The notes under the pieces: model-generated
Told to the model about the DNA's origin: nothing
The model's input: only the letters and a program-made list of their open reading frames with translations
The model's database searches: none
Translations under genes and position numbers: made by a program
Source: Blastocladiella emersonii ATCC 22665
Taxonomy: Eukaryota; Fungi; Blastocladiomycota
Direction of reading: 5' to 3'
Length of the DNA: 64,000 nucleotides
NCBI GenBank assembly: GCA_025594325.1
Contig: JANHCV010000003.1
Span: 310,001 to 374,000, forward strand
Shown: piece after piece, positions 24,149 through 35,962 of the stretch
Layout of the letters: every line of letters begins with the position of its first letter
Position numbering within the stretch: position 1 is the first letter of the stretch

Positions 24149-27100
24149 CGGTCCGCGGCCGTTTGTTATTCGTTTTTCTGTTTCCGTTTGGTTGCTCTCG
24201 AGCATTGTACATACACATCTAGTTTTCTCGGACACCACTCGTTCTCTCGTTTGAAAGGGTCCTGCGCGTTGCTGGCCTTGCCGCGGCTGCTCGAGGTGAC
24301 CCGCCGCCACGGCGACGGTTGTGGTCGTCCATTGCGAGCACCTTTCAAGGGTAACGATGTATTGCCGAAAATCCTTAGGGATACATTGCACAAGACCGTG
24401 AAGCGACCGTTTCGGGCCACGGTTTCCCGGTCGAAGAGCGGGAAACCGCCGAAGAAGATTGCGGGTGAGGAGCAAGAGCGCAACAACTCTTGGTGGCCAC
24501 GGCTTTGATCAACTCCTTCCGGTTCTTTGACGCAGCGGAGCCCTTGCCGTAGTCGAGTTGAGACACGAGCTGGCGGTTGCTCTCGACGTCCGGTTGATCA
24601 TGAGCGAGCTCGCGGGGAGGAATGTGGCGAGGGGCACGGTGATGGCGAGCCCGGCAACGAAGAGACTGGCCGGGTAGAAAATGGGGTTCTGCGTTTGCGT
24701 GAGTCTGGCGAGCGGGAGAGACCTTTGGCCAAGCCGTACACGTCGCCGACGACTCAGCGCGAGGACACGGAGCGAGGGACTAGACTCACACCTCGACGTG
24801 GGCGAGCGGCTTCACAAGCGGGAACACCCAGGCGACGATAAGTGTGAGGGCACCGAGGCGAGACTACGTGATGGGCTCTATGGCGGCGTTGGTAATACAC
24901 GAGCCCGCCAAAGGCATCAATCGAGCTCGCCAAAATTGGATCCCGGCACGTAAGAAACTGCTAGCATGAGTCCGTACTCACAGAGTTGCGTAGCGGAAGA
25001 GCAGAAGGTTTTTGAGGAAGCGGTGCAAGACAGGGGTAGCGTGTAACCGGCCGTCGCATTCTCGGTTGCACGGGAAGGGTACATTTTCAGGTGTTGGCGA
25101 ATTCGTAGCACTATGAGTGACCTGAGAGATCGCAGTCCGAGAGCACGGCGCGCTCAAGTTCGGCCTTGCTATACTGCGCCGCCGGTCGGCGTGTGCTCAC
25201 GGACTGTCCAGTACAAGGCCCGCTTAATAAGTTTCAGCAAGTTACGCTAGCGATTCATTGGTTTTAATGGAGTATGGCGCTGTGTCAGTGAGGCCAAGCG
25301 GGGAAGCGAGCTCGAGGCTCAAGCAAGCCCCTTCAGCTCGCCCGTGGCGCACCCCGTAGTCCACGCTATGGCGCAACACGCACTCGTGTCGATGAGCACG
25401 AGGCGATGTATCCCTCAAGGTGACATACGAAGTACGACGAGAAATGGGAGAGATCGACACTGACAGCGCAGCCTGCGCCGTGCGCCTAGCTTCAAAGGAT
25501 GCCCAAGCCAGGTGCCGCTGAACCAAGTCGCGATCCGGGCAGAACCTTGACAGCGTGACATGTGTGCGTTCCATGAGACACCAAATAAAACGTGTGAATG
25601 AAACTGGGAGAGACGAGCTCGAGCTGTCAAGGAGGCGCGACTCGGCCACGCGATGGCCATCGAGACGCGAAGGTGGCGAAGGCCACGGAGACTAGTACCG
25701 CGAGCCAGATCGTAACGTTCTGAGAGCTGCTTGTTGGCGAGAAAAGACCGAGGGACACATATAAAGTAGCAACGCAAGCGCTGTCCAAAAACTGACTCGA
25801 CCCCGTCACTCGCCGCGGAACCCCACACGGCGAGCGAGCGATGACGTCTAACGACACCCTCCTGTCCACGCACCGCGGACGCGCCGCGATGCTCGACGAC
25901 CACCACCCACCAAACGCCCACACGACCTCCGCACCGTTCTGGCGCCAAGTCCCGAACCACTTATGCGCGTGTATGATTAGCACGGCGGGGAAGCGGGCCG
26001 AGGCACCGGAGACTGGTCGCGAGAGGTCCAGCCGCCCGCAACAAAACTGCGTGCACGTCGATGCGCGGAACCGCAACTGACGGCGAGAACCCGGACCCTC
26101 CAGTCAGGTACGAGTCCGGGCACAGTTGGTCACGGACAGCTCGAGGCGCTGCACACACACCTCCACCGAAGGGCACTGCCCGCACGCGCAGAGCACGCGC
26201 AACCGGAACGGGAGCAAAAACGGACCGCGGACTTCAACGAGACCAGACGTCTCTTCAGCGAAGGGTTGGGGAAGTCAGCCGCCCGCCCCCGGGTCGGCGA
26301 CACTCCTTACTACCAACAACGGCAGCCCGCGGCGCAGTGGATCGGCGAGCAGCGAGATGTGTGTGTTGCATGGAGTGGGAGGTGGATCGGAGCGGCCGCG
26401 ACGGGCAGCAGATGCGCGAGAAGAAATGTCGTCACCGTACGCTTGGGATCGAGTTGCATGGGGCGGTGGTGGCGGATGAGTGAGCAGAGTAGTGAAGGAA
26501 GTCTTGCGGGGTTCTGAAGAGCGAGAGAGCGGGGACGGGACCGGGGGCGCGCTTTGTACGCGGGCCGGGAGCACGGGCGAGCGCGGCCCGCGGTCTACGC
26601 GTCCGCCGCGCGAATATTACGGATCCGTTGCGCCAAGTGGGCCTCGCTGGGTGCCCGAGCACCGTTCCGGCGGAACGTTTTTGCGCTGCGAAACGCGCGC
26701 GAAAATGTGTCGCAGCGGCGGCGGGAGACGCGTTTTTCGCTCACCTGAACATCACGTGTGCGTTTGGAGACATTTTTCGCTCGGCACGGACGCCGCCGCA
26801 CGTGTGGAACGCTCGCGGCGCCGATCCACGAGTTTAAGAGGCAAGCGCGCCGGTCTCGCTGGAAACGAGCCTGCCCTATATCACAAGGCTTGCCCAGACT
26901 GCTTTGGTGATGTGGCTCGACGCGAGACTCAGCTGTCGCGCACGGCGCCAAGGACTAGTTCGGGTCGACATGAGGAAGTGCTCGAACGGCGAGGCCGGGC
27001 CACTCTCTCTATGAAGTACTCGAGAGCGGTAGCATCGAAATTGGTCCAATGGTCGCGCTGTGCGGCTCCTATGCGTGCGAGGCTGCAGGACAGTGCCTCG

Positions 27101-28182
27101 TTGATGAGGAGCTGTCAGGCGAGAGTCGGAGGCCAATTTTGAGTGTAGAAGCAAGGACGAGAAGTTTGACGTGAGGTCCGTGGGCTCCTCGGGGGTAACG
27201 CCTGCGAAGCCGAGCAGCACGGGATCCCGTTCTGGGGCCGAATGGGCGGCGGCCCATGGAGTTTGAGGAAGAAGAACCAGAACGGGGGATTGCATCAAGT
27301 GGGTTCGTCAGATTCATGTGCTGCATCGCAAGGCAATCCGTTGACGGGAGCGTGGGCGGGATGCGCGGCGACGTGAGAGTTCTGTTGGTGTGGCGTGGCG
27401 CGCGACCTGCACCACGGGCGCAGCGCGTCTCACTGATGGATACAAACGCGACCCAACCGCTCGAGGAGGTCGACAAGACGCTGTGAAACATCTCCGAGGC
27501 CTCATAAGATCGTCGATCCAAAGAGTGCGGGTAAAACCAAGCGGTTCTCTGTGCTCACGGTCGAGTCGAGCGTGTCGCTTCAAGGAGCATGGGACGGCAC
27601 TGAGCCCAGCGTGCCGTGTCGGTAGGTCTCAGGTAAGAGCTGAAAACAGCATAATGATCCATCTTGACCGATGAGCTCAGGCACGAATAACCGACGCGCG
27701 CTCGCCGCGGGGCTCAGCGCGTGCGAAGGCTAGCCCATGCAGACGGCAGCGCATCTGAACGGTTGCCGCAAGTTGAACATGATCTCTCAGGGCTATTCAC
27801 CGAGTATCGCTTTGGTCGGAGAGAGCGGAAGCGCAGCGAGCGATGAACGGTCATCAGCGAGAAGTGGCGCAACGCGACCGCTCTCGCTTGCCTTCAGCCA
27901 ACCCGTGATGGTCGCCGCCGATCTCTCGAGTCTCCGTCGTGGACCACGCTATGCATCATATCGTGAGGGACTCGATGCACTCGCGCCCCGCGGGCTGGGT
28001 CGCCACCCGGCGGTCTGGACTTGGTTCCGTGGCGACCGATCTTACAGCAGCAGCACCACGCTCGGCGCGAGGCCCGTGGAGAACTGTGCGGCAGCGAGGA
28101 TGGATCTCTATGAGGATTCGACGCGCTGTCGACTAAGTCGCTTCCCCGGTCGCTTCCTCGCTTCCGAACCTCGCACGCCGCC

Positions 28183-28615
28183 ATGAATCATTCGCCCCAC
28201 GCGCGCCCTCAGTCCCAGCGACTTGCTGCATCGCTTCCAGCGCGCATCTGGCGATCCACTCCCTCGATCGACAACGACCGCGACGTTGCGGCGGCCGAGG
28301 CGTTGATCCGCAAGCGGGTCCGCGGTCACTTGCGGTTTCGTTGCCTCAACTTTGCGCTCAACCATTGTACGTCGCTCGGTGTAGGCGCAGCAGCAACTCA
28401 AGCTCGGCTCGCACTACACTGTTCCTGGCATCGCCGCCTCGGAGCTCGCGGCGACGCGCGTGGGACCTGCGCAGCAAGAGGACGGACCAGTCGAGGAGGA
28501 ACTCGAGGAGCTGCACGACGTACTCGAAATCGAGGATCCTGCTCCCACTGCGCCGTTCCAGACATCGCCTGATCATCCGCTCAACGGGCTCGTCGATGGC
28601 CTCGACCCGCTTTGA
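28183..28615 (+). CDS. Small two-exon orphan protein (about 121 aa) with an acidic C-terminus
   Basis: gccgccATG start. A phase-0 intron at 28318-28384 (gtccgc..gctcaac..tgtag, 67 nt) joins ..AEALIRKR to AQQQLKLGSHY..EEELEELHDVLEIED..GLDPL*. Confidence 0.4.
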
Positions 28616-28629
28616 TCACGCTCACTTGG

Positions 28630-31600
28630 TGCGGCTATCATGCGAGTCGGGCAGTGACGCAATCAGGAGGAGAAGAAGTCACAGTCATACAAGAACACGT
28701 CCGTGAGGACAGCAGTGTATTCACGACGCTGTAAGTGAAGATCGCAGAGCACAGGGTGCCTGGGATGGTGAGTGAAGCTGACTGCGCGACTCGGGCTTGT
28801 GCCAAACTGCTTGATTTGTGAACGACGTGCGGGTCGGCGACGAAGAGGGACTGCTTGATGTTCTTGATGAGCAATGAGGAAGGGAACGAGCTTGAGTTTT
28901 TGATGGCCGAGAAGGAAGATGTAGTTGATGCGTGAACTTGATGGTGCCCGGGCGTGATGAGGATTGACACAATGAGCTTGTACTCGAAGCTTGACGAATC
29001 AACATATTGGATGGGTGTCAGTTAAAGGACCATGACGGGACCAGATCAATGCGTAGTACCTTGGTACGGCCACGATGGCTGTGTGTGCTGCTTGCTTGAC
29101 TTGACTTGACTTGACTTGGTGGTGAACTCGTGTGCGTGATGAAGTTGGAGATCTGGAGGGACCCAAGAGCGTGGGCTAGTTGCCTGATCGTGGCGACGAC
29201 GGCGAGTCGAGAAATGCGTACCTGGCTGCCATGTCTGAGAAGTTGACCATGATGGCCTGCTTGCCGCCGCGCCTTGTCACGCTCACGGTGCAGAATCGCA
29301 ACCACGGCCACTCGCTTGACGCCTTGACGCGCTATGATGGTGATATAGCGTGCTAGCGAGCTAGCGAGGTTTTCGACCTTCAGAGACGCGCCAGAAGGGC
29401 GGTGCGTACTTTGACAACGTGTCTGGCACGAGTCAAACAAGTGGCCAAGGTCGCAATCCCGCACCACAAGACGATTGTGAAGAGCTGGCTGGATGGCGCG
29501 GATGTTGCTCTCAAGGGTCTACACGGAGCAGCGAAAGTCAGTTGTCTTGCCTGAGCGTGACAACAACCGCGAGTTGGACGACACGGACACTGCTGTCAAT
29601 CGTGGCCGAGGACTTGACCGTGTGCTGGTTGCTCGCCACTGCCGCGCGCCTGCTGAACCCGCCTCGCGGTGCAGGACCGCGCGACCAGTCGCCCGACACC
29701 CAACGCTATGATATAGCTCGCCGACATTCCGGCACGTGCCAGGAGGGCAGTGCGTACTCTGAAGACGTGTCGGGCGTGTGCGTCAAGCGAGTGTGGTCGC
29801 GATCCGATCCCGCACCGCGAGCCGGGTGCGCGACTCCAACTGCCGTTGAAGCTGTCGCGGATAAACTACACGGACAAGCGAGCGTGAGTTGCCCGACCGC
29901 GACTACAGCAGCGAGCCGAGGGAAAAGTGAACCTTGCTGCCGTGGCCGTGGCCAAGAAGTCGCCCGACCGTGAACTGCCGCACCACGTCACGGTTGCGCG
30001 ACGTCTCAAGCAAGCGAGCAAGTTGGATTGCTGGCGCGGTTGATGATGATGTTCTTGAGAATCTACACAACACGGATCAATGAACGTGAGTTGGCTGATT
30101 GCAGGAGTTTTGAGCGCGAGGGAACAAGTACCTCGATGAATGGCCACAAACGAATCGCCTTGCTGCCCTTGTCGTCGACGTGACGCCAAGCTGCTGTAGT
30201 GGATCTTGAAGAAGCGTCACAATATCAGCGCAAGTGTGAGTTTGCCAATCACGGTGACAGACGGAAGGTTGGAGGAGGCGTACCTGCTGTTGCCAAACTG
30301 AACATGAATTGCTTGCCCTTGCTGGCTGCGACTGCTCGCTCGACGCCATGACGCCTTGATGTAGCCGTTGGCCTTGGTAGCGCTTGCCGGGAGGGCGACG
30401 CGTGCGTCCAGATAGAATGCCGAGCCAGCGGTCCCGGTTGCGACCCCGCACCACAACACAGGCGCGCGTTATGGGCAGGCGGTGCGTGGAGAGTCTCGGA
30501 GAAGCTACACGGATCAGCGAGTGTGAGTTCGTCGCCCAATCATGACAAAAGCAGGCCAGGGGTAGCATACATGTTGATGTGGTCTAGTCAACCATGGACC
30601 CGCGCCGCGCCCGACCCAACCCAAACTTGATGTTGGTGGCGGCGACAGCGCGCAACTTCCCTAGGAAAACGAGCCATCAAGTTGAACGCAAAACGTCTCG
30701 GCGCCAGAGCCTGCAGAACCTATACGGGCAGTAACAAGTGAGATTCCAGATCATAAAAACGCCATGTCTGGACGCCGTGGTACCTTGCGCCGTCACGGCG
30801 GCCGTACACTTCTTGATGCAAATTGTTGAGTCAAGTTGCCGCGTTGCGTCGTGTTGCGGGGCCGCGACCACCCGCTCAACACAGGAGGGCGCCACCTCGG
30901 AGTATAGCATGAATTACAGGTTCCACCACCTGCCAAGCAGTGGGTACTGAGTAACGCCCTCGTCGTGTCAAGCGGACGGCCGCAGCCCCACAGCACAACG
31001 TGACGCGACGCGACGCAACACAATCAAGACATTGTATGACCATAGAGAAGCTACACGGATCGATGGGTAAGTTTCGGTTGATTAAGGTCGAGTTGAGGAC
31101 GAGAGAAATAGTACCTCAGACGATGGCCTGGCCACAATGACCATAGCCAACACGCCACGGAAGCTCGATGACCTGAACAATGAGAACTTGCCGCGTTGGC
31201 CAAGATGGCGCCACGGCACGAGGGCGTGGGCAGCTGCGCGTGGCATGCTCAAGCAATTGTCGGATTGCGCACAATCAAACGCGCGCCGGAGCTACACGTA
31301 TGGAAAAGTGTCAGTTGCCAGATAATGACAACACGAGGGCAGGACGCAGTACCTCAACGCGCTGCGGCCATGGTCAAAATTCGACCAGTCGAATCCCACT
31401 TGCGCCACACCGCCGCGCGCGACAGGAACTTGACACGAGTCAGAGAGCGCGCGAGTACTCGCGACCCAACGCCGTAGCGAGGGCGAAAGCGTGAACTTGA
31501 GCGCGCGCGGCTTGCATGAAAAGCAGCGCCGGTGCGTGTGGAACTTGAGGATGAGGACAATGGAGGGCTTGATGATGATGTCGCCGAGCCGTCATAGTAG

Positions 31601-33210
31601 TAGTTGAGCACCTGACCGATCCAGCTACACGTGATGGGGTTTGAGCGGGTGAGATGTGGGTTGGATCCGAGTCGCTGGAATTCCGCTACCGTACCTGCTG
31701 TTGAGGCACACACCTGGCAGAGGTTGATCAGGGTCACACGCAAGCGTGGCGGCGCAGCGGACGGGTGCACTTGGGGCAGCAAAACGGGGGCGGCGGTTGT
31801 GGACGGCAGGAGGGTTCGAGAGTGATCAGTGCCACCCACAACCGCAAGGGCTGTACTCTGTCCCGTACTTGGCCATCACCATCCCTTCATTAGCCCTTGC
31901 GGCGAGGCCCAGCACTTCTTGCCACGTTGGGTGCTGCCACAACGTGTCTCGCGAGAACAAGCGCATGAAGGGGCTGTGGTGGGTGCCGGCGGCAGCGCGC
32001 GAGGCGCTGCTCCTCGCCTCCAGGAACTAGGGCCAGGCGGCTAGTAGACCCGCCCCCCCAGTGCACACGTACGCCGCGCCGCACCAGGCACACGAGGACC
32101 AACTGCGGCTGTTGCCCGTTGTTGTTGTGACGCGGTCAGTTGAGCTGGCCGACTGCGCACCGTCGATCAAGATGTTGAACCCAAACAGCGCGTCCTTGGT
32201 GAGCCCGAGCAGCTTGAAGTTGACCACGGTGACCTTGCACGACATCGTGTTGAGGTTGAGGCCGAGCTGGTGTGCGACGGCAGCTTGGACACGATGGCTA
32301 GCTAGCATTGATGATGACCGTTGAGCGCAAACCCAATCCGCCTACATGAGGGAACCATGTGGTCAGAGCCACGTCCGCCAGGTCTCGGCCGTGATGTTGC
32401 CGTGCCTGCTGCATTGGCGCACTGCCGAGCTCGAGGTGACTGTACTAGGTGCTGATTTGAGCGGGTCAAGCCGTGCCACGCGGCTGCCGCGTCAGAATGC
32501 GCGGCTGAGGTGACGGCGGGACAGCCTGCGCTGCACAAGCTCGACCTTGGGACAGCTGGCGAAGTCGCAGATTGACACCCACGGAGAATCTACACATACA
32601 ATAGGTGAGCCGCGAGTCCACCAAGTCGCTGTGTCATGAGCCGAGGTACCTTGGCGCGACGTGTCAGTGGCCGGACCCGGGCCGCCACTCAGCACGAAGT
32701 GAACTCAGCCAGATCGTGCGATACGACGGTGGCGCCCGGTACGCTTTGCCAGTGCGAGACGGAGCTCTTCCGACATGTTCTTGACGTTTTTGACGAGCGT
32801 GCAAAGGAGCGTGGCGAGGAACAGCGTGTTGGTGCAGCCAAAGATCAGGTTGACGTGAGGTATGAGAACAGCTTGATCACAATTGCCGAGCTTGGACTTG
32901 TCGTAGCTGGTAGTTCTTGAGCCCGGGACCGACACGTCTACACGCGGGGGACCCGACATTAGCGTCAAGGCGAGGTGGATCCGTGCCACGCCAATGGCGT
33001 AGCCTGTGCGGCGGCACACCGTCGATACAGCTCTGCGACAGCTGGAGCCCGAGGACCGCAGTGGCACTCGATCTGGGCAGCCGGCCGAAGACCTGCTTAT
33101 CGCGTCACGAGCGGCGGGAACAGGCCAACCCATTGCCACCGGCGGTGGGCCGCCGTGCTTACAGTGGCCGAGGCCGGCGCGGTTGTTTTGAGTCGATATC
33201 ATGGAGTGGA
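28630..33210 (-). pseudogene. Intron-dense degenerate gene of unknown family
   Basis: At least 13 minus-strand acceptors (branch site then mostly ..GTGTAG) pair with GTAC/GTAT donors to give 60-70 nt introns, e.g. 32590-32649, 31625-31694, 31292-31352, 31051-31114, 30720-30783, 30505-30570, 30063-30131. The exons hold coding-like peptides but carry indels and stops. Confidence 0.75.
29095..29118. repeat. (TTGAC)n pentanucleotide microsatellite
   Basis: cttgcttgacttgacttgacttgacttgg. Confidence 0.8.
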
Positions 33211-33589
33211 CGGGTGACGACGCGGAAGGAAGTAGGCGTTGAGGGTGGTGTTGGTGCATGGGGGAGCGCAAGCGCGCTCGCGGCGAGTGCGTTGCAGTTG
33301 GGATCATGGCTTGTTTCGTCGCGCAACGGGGAGCGATGGCGAGAAGCATCGGCCACGAGTGGATCTCGCCGGCTCGTTCACGACGAATCGCGCTTCGGCG
33401 AAACGAAGGGAGACACGCGGGAAGGAGACGCGTCGCGCCGTCACGTGGGCGGGCGCGAGACAATATTCCGAGCACGCGTTTTGGAGACACTTGGAGACAT
33501 TTCACTCTTCACACAGCCGGCTCTTGGCACTCAAGGTCAAACTTGAGTCGGCATCGACGATCTTTGAGGTTCCGTCAACGGCAAGCAGC

Positions 33590-33641
33590 GATGGACGCGT
33601 TGCGAACGTCGCGCCGATGGACGCGTTGCGAACGTCGCGCC
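33590..33641. repeat. Perfect 26-bp tandem duplication containing ACGCGT
   Basis: GATGGACGCGTTGCGAACGTCGCGCC at 33590-33615 and again at 33616-33641. Confidence 0.95.
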
Positions 33642-33756
33642 GCGGCTTACCAGCGCTCTCGACCCGCCATGAACTCTCCATGAATCGGGCTTTTGACCCA
33701 CCGCAACTTGCTGCAACCTTATCTTTGAGAGCGTTATGTTCGCCCTCGTGCCAGCC

Positions 33757-35962
33757 ATGACCAACGTTGCGCCACCGGCGGGGACCCGCATCGCGCCGAG
33801 CGAGCGCGACGCCATAACGTGCTTTGGCATGCTCGGTCAGTGTTGATGCACGAGCTGCGACGCCACTAGAGCCTGACGCGCCTCCACCTACTCGGTAGAC
33901 GACGTTGTGTAATGGGCACAGCCTGCTGACCGAGTCCGTGGTCCAGGGCGAGCCGATCCCGCTGCATGCCTTCGAGCTACTCCCGTTCCCGCACCCGATC
34001 CCGCTAGCGGGGCTCGGTCAGGTCCCGGTCCTCGCCTCCGAGCGCGTAGACAGCGTCACGCTCTCGGGCCCGACGACCCGGCCCAGGCCAACTGCTGCTG
34101 CTGCTGCTGCAGGGCAAGGGGTCGGCCGCGCTGAAACTTGCTCGTGCCACGCTGCCCGCCGAGGAGACGCGCGCCGTCGTCGCGCAGGTCGCCTTCGGCA
34201 AGCTCAACGCGTGCCAGTGGGACGACGCACTTGCGCTGCTCAAGAAGGTCCGCCTCGAGCCGCAGTACCTGCTGCACACGGCCGACCGGGACCATTCGCG
34301 GTACGGGCGCGAGAACAAGGAGATTGCCGCGTTCCTCACCGAGGTCAAGGCGCCCGAGTCGTTTGAAGCCATCGGTACGGCGCCACGCTCTCACTTCACT
34401 CTGAGCGGGATCTCACAAGCGTCCGCTCACTCCAGTCAATCTCGCCATGCACAAGCTCTGCGGCGGCCAGCCCTCGTCGCTCGACTCGGCCTGGGTCGCG
34501 TCGCTCCGCGCTTCGCTGGACGAGCGCGTCGACCGGTTCCTGCTCTCGTACCTCGACGCATGGTGGTCCACGTCCGATGCCGTCGACCCGACCGTCGAGG
34601 TCGCGCGGCTGCACCTGCTGCTGAAACTAGACCGCGGCATGCAGGAGGTGGTGGCGCAGGCGCGACTCGTGTGCGACAGCTCGCTGTCCAGCGACGAGCA
34701 CTAGCGGCTCGCCGACGATGTCGCCGCACGCGGTCACCCGTTTGCCGAGTCGCTCGTCTCGCAGTGCGCTGGTGACACACGCCGCGAACTCGACCTGTGG
34801 CAGTCGCTCCTCGACTCGACGCCGCCCGCGACCGCGACCGCCGCGCCAGGCGGCAAACCGCGCTGGGTCTCCGCCCGCGGCGTTGCGCAGCTGCTCGCCG
34901 ATCTCGGGTACGCCGCCGACCACGCGTCCGACATCCAGTGGCTCCTCGCGCGCGACCGCGCCTTCGCGTCGCACGTCCTGCGCACCTGGATCCCGGCATT
35001 TGACGAGGAGCGGCTCGCGGCGCTTGGCGCTCGGCCATGTGGCGCTCGTCGCTTACCTCGAGAACTCGAACGGGCCGCGCGGCGTGCTCGTACCCGCATA
35101 CCTCGCCGAGGGCGACAGCGTCGGCATCTGGCTCAGCAAGTACCGCGCGGCCATTATCGCGTTCTACGTCTTCGTTTCGGACTTTTTCGCGGCGACCTGG
35201 GTCCGAGGTACGAGGGCAGCTACTCGCCTTCCTGACGAGCGTCGCGGGATTGGGCGGCGAGGATCCGGTGGGCAAGGTGCGCGAGTGCCTCGTCCCCGCT
35301 GACGAGATTGCGTTCGAGCTCACCCTGCTTGAGGCCGACCCAACGGCGCGTGCGCCAGTACGTGAACGGGGTCGGCGACTTTGCGTCTGCGCACCGGGTG
35401 TGCGGGACTGAGGAGGTGCCGTTCGAGGTCGTGGTCGACGCGCCTCTCAAGATGGACAGACGGTACGTTTGCTCCAGGCGCTGCGTCCAGCTCATCACTC
35501 ACAAACGACCGGGTTCTAGCGACGCGTACCGGAGCCTCTTCATGCCGTTCGCCGCCAAGGACATGGACGTGGTCGACTTTCGCGCGATTGCCAACGTGCT
35601 GCCCGGCGACTGGGCGCCCAAACGCGTGGCACTGCTCCTCATGCACGAGCTCGTGCAGCTTACGCGCCTCACTGGAGCACCATGGTCAAGTCGCTCGAGC
35701 ATCAACGCAACACGACGGTACGCTGCTCCTTCCCAGCACCCTGGCCATGGCTAACGCTCGTGCCATACTGTAGGCCAAGCCGATCATTCTCGCTGCAGCT
35801 CAGGAGCAGCCTGGTCCCGTCACGCCGCCCGCCAGCTGCTTCGCATTCGGGTGCGCCGTCGACTCGTTCGTCGCGACGCACGCCGGCCTGCAAGTCTGTT
35901 CAACGTCGCGGCGGGTACTGCCAGGTCCGCCCAGCTCCGTGCCCGTTCGAGAAGGGACGTAA
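33757..35962 (+). pseudogene. VPS39/VPS3 (TGFBRAP1)-family pseudogene
   Basis: Reconstructed peptides VRQYVNGVGDFASAHRVC and VDFRAIANVLPGDWAPKRVALLLMHEL..STMVKSLEHQRN fit the clathrin-repeat/Vps39_2 region. There is an in-frame TAG at 34702, several frameshifts, and canonical introns near 34376-34436 and 35719-35773. Confidence 0.55.

Follow-up and report, generated by a model that had tools for sequence, protein, structure and literature searches.

Intron-like units on the minus strand

We analyzed a 64,000-nt stretch of the genome of the blastocladiomycete fungus Blastocladiella emersonii ATCC 22665 (C15:310,001-374,000, contig JANHCV010000003.1; hereafter the window) and, within it, positions 28,630-33,210, where the minus strand carries a dense series of intron-like units separated by exon-like segments. 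An original prediction, made from the sequence alone, had described an unusually intron-dense gene here, either the relic of a large conserved gene whose splice signals survive or a real gene damaged by assembly errors. No working gene lies hidden at the locus. The assembly comprises 21 contigs (32.65 Mb); the window has a GC content of 0.65-0.73, with low-GC islands at ~20-34 kb and 50-54 kb (0.58-0.63), and the 20-28 kb region flanking the locus is also composed of other repeat families.

To assess whether the splice-like signal is real, we counted the motif CTACACG and found 13 instances in the window. Seven of them fall at 29,519-32,944, every one on the plus strand, while the remaining window predicts ~0.17 (Poisson P ~6e-10). 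A strict intron scan (GT[AT].. donor, YTNAY branch, [GT]TAG acceptor, length 45-130 nt) returned 10 minus-strand units in 28-34 kb against a rate elsewhere of ~0.27 per kb of strand (P ~8e-6), and by hand curation we arrived at 13, each 60-79 nt long, from 32,649 to 28,990; in eight of them the branch survives together with a GTA-type donor and a TAG acceptor. The recurring splice motif reported in the original prediction is therefore real, and the peptides and two phase-0 joins quoted there are exact when compared with the sequence and the list of open reading frames (ORFs).

The signal itself is not peculiar to this locus. When the whole genome was scanned for GTACG N25-55 CTCAC N6-20 CGTGTAG (52-80 nt), 397 strict matches were found, compared with 0-1 in the reversed control, and most of the introns published for B. 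emersonii measure 60-79 nt and have canonical ends (PMC2773782). GTAC...CTCAC...GTGTAG is thus the ordinary intron consensus of the species, and only its density is unusual here. As a side observation, the 397 genome-wide matches to so extended a consensus mark the splice signals of B. emersonii as unusually information-rich. The density, which had also been claimed to exceed that of the intact neighbors, is genuinely unusual, since those neighbors are single long ORFs (e.g., topoisomerase II [Top2], 1,416 codons) and the published annotation holds 19,375 introns in 10,031 genes, or ~1.9 introns per gene (PMC9730499).

Features of the locus and its surroundings (window coordinates; GC3, GC content at third codon positions)
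Feature	Coordinates	Strand	Description
Relic gene copy, body	28,641-32,937	-	14 exon-like segments and 13 intron-like units; GC3 signal weak and patchy
Upstream family-homologous stretch	32,938-33,911	-	66-76% identity to C2 and C21 copies; GC by codon phase flat
Intron-like unit 1	32,590-32,649	-	60 nt; GTACC...GGCTCAC...GTGTAG; signals intact
Intron-like unit 2	32,342-32,405	-	64 nt; donor GT to GC at 32,405-32,404 in this copy; acceptor ATGTAG
Exon E2, most coding-like exon	32,162-32,341	-	...HQLGLNLNTMSCKVTVVNFKLLGLTKDALFGFNILID; local GC3 0.90-0.93; common to six copies
Intron-like unit 3	31,625-31,694	-	70 nt; GTACGG...TCTCAC...CGTGTAG; signals intact; conserved in L013
Intron-like unit 4	31,292-31,352	-	61 nt; GTACTG...AACTGAC...CGTGTAG; signals intact; weak match to module intron profile
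Intron-like unit 5	31,051-31,114	-	64 nt; GTACTA...AACTTAC...CCGTGTAG; signals intact
Intron-like unit 6	30,720-30,783	-	64 nt; GTACCA...ATCTCAC...CCGTATAG
Intron-like unit 7	30,505-30,570	-	66 nt; GTATGC...AACTCACACTCGCTGATCCGTGTAG; family-specific module type
Intron-like unit 8	30,215-30,283	-	69 nt; donor GTACGC intact, acceptor destroyed (...TTGTGACG)
Intron-like unit 9	30,063-30,131	-	69 nt; GTACTT...AACTCAC...GTGTAG; phase-0 join of VDDKGSKAIRLWPFIE to ILKNIIINRASNP
Intron-like unit 10	29,866-29,932	-	67 nt; donor weakened to GTTCAC, acceptor CCGTGTAG intact
Intron-like unit 11	29,519-29,597	-	donor lost; branch AACTGAC and acceptor CCGTGTAG retained
Intron-like unit 12	29,153-29,221	-	69 nt; donor GTACGC intact, branch mutated (CTAGC), acceptor CCAG
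Intron-like unit 13	28,990-29,059	-	70 nt; GTACTACG...AACTGAC...CAAG
Terminal exon-like ORF	28,641-28,989	-	FEYKLIVSILITPGHH...; only in window and identical C15 copy; homologue not found
Degenerate tandem array of exon-plus-intron module	29,151-31,416	-	modules ~200-370 nt, eight full or partial
Imperfect inverted repeat (hairpin), module A	29,657-29,846		~190 nt; DNA fold of 29,640-29,850
Inverted repeat of the same kind, module B	29,281-29,473		DNA fold z = -3.8
Identical tract	25,956-30,011		4,056 bp, 100% identity to inverted C15 copy ~98 kb distant

Coding decay in a dispersed repeat family

Once the 13 units are taken out, 3,425 nt remain, and each frame of this remainder is interrupted by 15-22 stops. 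While native genes have a GC3 of 0.88-0.97 (Top2, 0.97; others, 0.94 and 0.88), the exon-like segments mostly lie at 0.5-0.7, with a few islands at 0.8-0.9, such as E2. The indels ascribed to the exons in the original prediction are seen as frameshifts: the frame of ILKNIIINRASNP meets a stop at 30,008-30,006, and the 130-nt exon concerned must be read in another frame to give LARLLETS....

Positions 28,630-33,210 are paralogous to stretches on C2 (several), C5, C6, C20 and C21 at 66-78% identity, which places the family on at least six contigs, with an inverted copy on C15 itself. Intron positions are common to the window copy and its paralogues in the alignments: that of unit 1 is conserved in L013 (C2:1,570-1,574 kb) and in L011-type copies, and the donor of unit 2 is retained as GGTACG by six other copies. 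Homology extends upstream to 35,902, and two co-linear copies (C2:918.8-925.9 kb and C2:1,479.6-1,485 kb) cover the window from 35,902 to ~29,680; the copies on C5, C6, C20, C21 and at C2:1,570-1,574 kb are partial. The copies are mosaics that differ in segment content. The middle part, 31,049-32,658, is otherwise present only in L013, apart from 31,739-32,091, which also matches the C21 copy L018.

We then compared the copies for signs of selection. Across five copies of E2, pairwise differences number 76, 86 and 57 at codon positions 1, 2 and 3, respectively; exons have diverged as much as introns; and exon indels between copies measure 1, 2, 4 and 7 nt, that is, not multiples of three. Together, these sequence comparisons show neutral decay. 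Splice signals have decayed elsewhere in the family too, with AG turned into GG in L015 and TTTAG read in L014. When 12 family loci were filtered by GC3 and ORF, no coding-like ORF of at least 50 codons was found inside the family region, and no intact member was found by exon translation of the L011 copy.

Searches for relatives were made exon by exon. Pfam returned nothing significant for the ten most coding-like minus-strand ORFs and nothing relevant for the plus-strand and flanking ORFs or the best-preserved copy, where the only match, to an ankyrin gene, fell outside the family. When 1.84 billion representatives were searched with a profile of E2 (A3), two proteins came back, KAI9168404.1 (137 aa) and KAI9155936.1 (117 aa), and nothing else. 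They are short, spliced "hypothetical proteins" of B. emersonii ATCC 22665 called on family copies (L011, C2:920,500-927,500, and L014, C5:693,000-699,000), and in both cases the annotation has probably mistaken a pseudogene fragment for a gene. The terminal ORF, the module ORF and the middle exon returned no match in word-index searches. As far as these searches reach, the exons appear to be without a relative outside B. emersonii. The proposed relic of a large conserved gene therefore stands as a nonfunctional, intron-retaining relic and falls as a large conserved gene, since no exon has an outside relative and every family copy examined is decayed; the two hypothetical proteins were the only protein matches obtained.

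The copies also bear possible marks of exchange and of their surroundings. The identical tract has its partner at C15:~439.0-443.1 kb, inverted, and its shoulders (25,050-25,955 and 30,012-30,643) are just 85-86% identical; such identity between old paralogues looks like recent gene conversion or an assembly artefact. At C2:1,472.5-1,492 kb (L026 and L034), a family copy lies in an 8.4-kb spacer between inverted-repeat arms of at least 5.5 kb (99.9% identical), and at C6:162-178.8 kb (L028 and L036), another lies in a 9.6-kb spacer between arms of at least 3.6 kb (99.75%). Mirror pairs of family matches with equal scores were also noted at C21:1,641/1,674 kb, C2:1,533/1,600 kb and C3:1,242/1,245 kb. 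The copy at C2:910-930 kb is bracketed by inverted segments of ~0.4-0.7 kb (74-77% identity) and by 545-bp direct repeats that are 95% identical (C2:914,516-915,060 and 927,482-928,026). We considered the latter as long terminal repeats (LTRs) and rejected this reading, as they are unique to that locus. An ankyrin-repeat ORF of 347 aa on the minus strand (L033:7067-8107; C2:927,067-928,107) adjoins the C2 family copy.

Upstream of the relic, on the plus strand, lies a multicopy companion gene relic (33,912-35,900), some pieces of which are strongly coding-like (GC3 0.78-0.9) and which contains frame breaks. It is 83% identical to C2:918.8-920.8 kb, and ~1 kb of the C2 copy is missing at 33,911/33,912. 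A VPS39-like identity was considered for this companion and dropped, as it has no Pfam support and the Vps39_1-domain gene of the genome lies at C1:3,285,528. Between the two relics, 32,938-33,911 shows no coding periodicity on either strand and probably represents what was once a 5' or intergenic region common to the relic and its divergent plus-strand companion gene. This noncoding stretch holds a perfect 26-bp tandem duplication (CGATGGACGCGTTGCGAACGTCGCGC x2, 33,589-33,640). Within the relic, a (CTTGA)x5.8 microsatellite lies at 29,091-29,118, in the 93-nt exon-like segment between units 12 and 13.

Exon-plus-intron modules and their hairpins

The 3' half of the relic was analyzed with a profile (A2) built from 15 modules from nine loci. 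Its matches define eight full or partial modules at 31,416-31,291, 30,973-30,836, 30,596-30,503, 30,471-30,230, 30,138-30,067, 29,984-29,864, 29,843-29,518 and 29,500-29,151. The array was detected by neither Tandem Repeats Finder nor self-BLAST and is visible only with the profile. The introns of the 3' half resemble each other because 31,416-29,151 is a tandem array of one exon-plus-intron module. Consistent with this, the extended intron 3' end CTCACRCTCGCTGATCCGTGTAG has 33 matches in the genome (control, 0), 30 of them within family loci, and none of the three outside is a close match. On these matches, the look-alike introns are paralogues of each other rather than introners. The motif recurs every 200-500 nt because a long consensus is still legible after ~25-30% divergence and because many of the introns are mutually paralogous. 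The original prediction had overlooked both that the motif is the ordinary intron consensus of the species and that its recurrence comes largely from tandem duplication of the module.

The exon-like part of each long module carries an inverted repeat. In module A, the fold of 29,640-29,850 reaches -70.3 kcal/mol (z = -6.6 vs. shuffles), the module profile also matches the reverse strand at the hairpin inverted repeats, and no other part of the module is as well conserved in the alignment. Compensatory change was seen in four of 50 predicted pairs, the main one splitting by subfamily, and neither an Rfam search at E up to 1 nor a tRNA scan gave a match. We also considered the hairpin as a miniature inverted-repeat transposable element (MITE). 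This was rejected, as each of the 15 matches in the genome falls within a family module and none is standalone. One short module (30,062-29,866) is without the hairpin, and the deletion responsible begins inside the left arm and ends past the right arm. Since this deletion ignores the hairpin ends, we read the hairpin as an internal inverted duplication and not a MITE.

Origin of the family and comparison with known systems

We consider it fairly probable (~0.65) that the locus is a dead member of a gene-derived repeat family confined to B. emersonii, unprocessed and with its introns retained. Under this interpretation, the ancestor would have been a genuine gene that was spliced: its exons would have been rich in GC3 and its introns short, as is normal for the species, and its 3' part would have been enlarged as one exon-plus-intron module was duplicated in tandem. 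This gene and its divergently oriented neighbor may then have been copied to at least six contigs, and the copies, lying in islands of low GC and many repeats, would since have drifted free of selection. The copies presumably spread via segmental duplication or ectopic recombination and not by transposition, a route favored because they are mosaics, because some lie in spacers between inverted repeats of 99.7-99.9% identity and because of the 4,056-bp identical tract.

Several observations weigh against this interpretation. Protein searches of the assembly for a functional parent gene returned decayed copies only, and the signs of a working ancestor are limited to residual GC3 periodicity and conserved intron positions. 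The blank word-index searches are limited to proteins whose length is 0.55-1.75 times that of the query. Public gene predictors call short ORFs on two family copies. Lastly, exon B, the 93-nt exon and the last exon join in phase 0 into ~240 open codons; however, this frame is not GC3-rich, and an ORF of such length is expected by chance at a stop density of ~1.6%.

Alternatively, the family could be a degenerate large transposable element of ~7-10 kb or more, with an intron-rich internal gene, that spread by transposition. We regard this as possible but doubtful. It would account for copies dispersed on at least six contigs and co-linear over 6-10 kb, for their neutrality, as if dead on arrival, and for their occupation of low-GC, repeat-rich islands, and it would fit both the inverted segments that flank the C2:910-930 kb block and the position of other copies between long, near-identical inverted repeats. 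However, Pfam found no transposase, reverse transcriptase, integrase or helicase domain in the window ORFs tested or in the best copy, although such a domain could lie concealed in a decayed ORF; sharp termini common to the copies, terminal inverted repeats, LTRs and target-site duplications were not established, the window copy being without sharp ends; the copies are mosaics of differing segment content; and the 545-bp direct repeats are confined to a single C2 locus. A further, unlikely idea is that the ~200-370 nt hairpin-bearing module is an actively amplifying cassette, or the ~7-10 kb block an undescribed intron-rich mobile element of Blastocladiomycota. If true, this would represent a lineage-specific way of multiplying and moving introns in an otherwise intron-poor genome.

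The survival of donor, branch and acceptor in eight of the 13 units, together with hairpins that fold far better than shuffled sequences (z = -6.6 and -3.8) and form the best-conserved part of the module, could also reflect a locus that is transcribed and spliced as a noncoding RNA, with selection keeping the splice signals and the hairpin. This is very unlikely, given that the splice signals decay about as fast as their surroundings (GT to GC in unit 2, and the changes in L015 and L014), that introns diverge as much as exons and that compensatory change is restricted to 4/50 pairs, with no Rfam match. Even harder to sustain is a real protein-coding gene broken only by assembly or consensus errors. 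The coding-like E2 (GC3 0.9) and the two in-phase joins agree with it, but the frameshift in exon 31,624-31,353 is common to the window and the C2 copy L013 and so predates their split; 25,956-30,011, and with it the 3' 1.4 kb of the relic, is identical in an independent second copy; there are at least 15 stops in every frame and a GC3 far under that of native genes; and the assembly was built from HiFi reads and polished with Illumina data (PMC9730499). The second reading offered by the original prediction thus finds little room. Equally improbable is repeated insertion of introner-like mobile elements into this gene: the introns do share sequence extending past their splice signals, but 30/33 extended 3'-end matches sit in family loci and the three outliers are not close, the repeated unit is exon plus intron in tandem rather than intron alone, and the hairpin, which belongs to the exon-like part, occurs nowhere on its own.

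Should the locus indeed be an unprocessed relic of a gene-derived family, it and its sister copies are better masked in annotation as a decayed repeat family than searched for a hidden gene. The locus illustrates both how the long B. emersonii intron consensus can be read long after the death of a gene and how tandem duplication of an exon-intron module inflates apparent intron density. In addition, the palindromes and the 4-kb identical tract bear on the homogenization of repeat islands in the B. emersonii genome.

Among known systems, introners and introner-like elements occur in Micromonas, Dothideomycete fungi and others. The relic shares with them an abundance of short introns that are nearly alike and lie close to predicted secondary structure; in contrast, its introns are restricted to one repeat family, come with exons and are not found in unrelated genes. 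Degenerate nonautonomous DNA transposons and foldback-like repeats are likewise dispersed, with neutral decay, internal hairpins and some flanking inverted repeats, but a transposase (among the ORFs tested), defined termini and target-site duplications were not found here. In repeat-encoding genes that grow by tandem exon-intron duplication, exon and short intron also follow each other head to tail with regularly spaced look-alike introns, whereas the modules of the relic vary in length (~200-370 nt), contain an internal inverted repeat, have lost their frame and could be assigned to no named protein repeat family. Unprocessed pseudogenes in segmental duplications differ in having a parent gene, which was not found in this assembly. 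They resemble the relic in retaining introns at conserved positions, in having paralogues, frameshifts, stops and dead splice sites, and in showing neutral substitutions and patches of recent gene conversion between copies; unlike them, the copies of the relic travel with a gene fragment on the opposite strand, and several lie between long inverted repeats.

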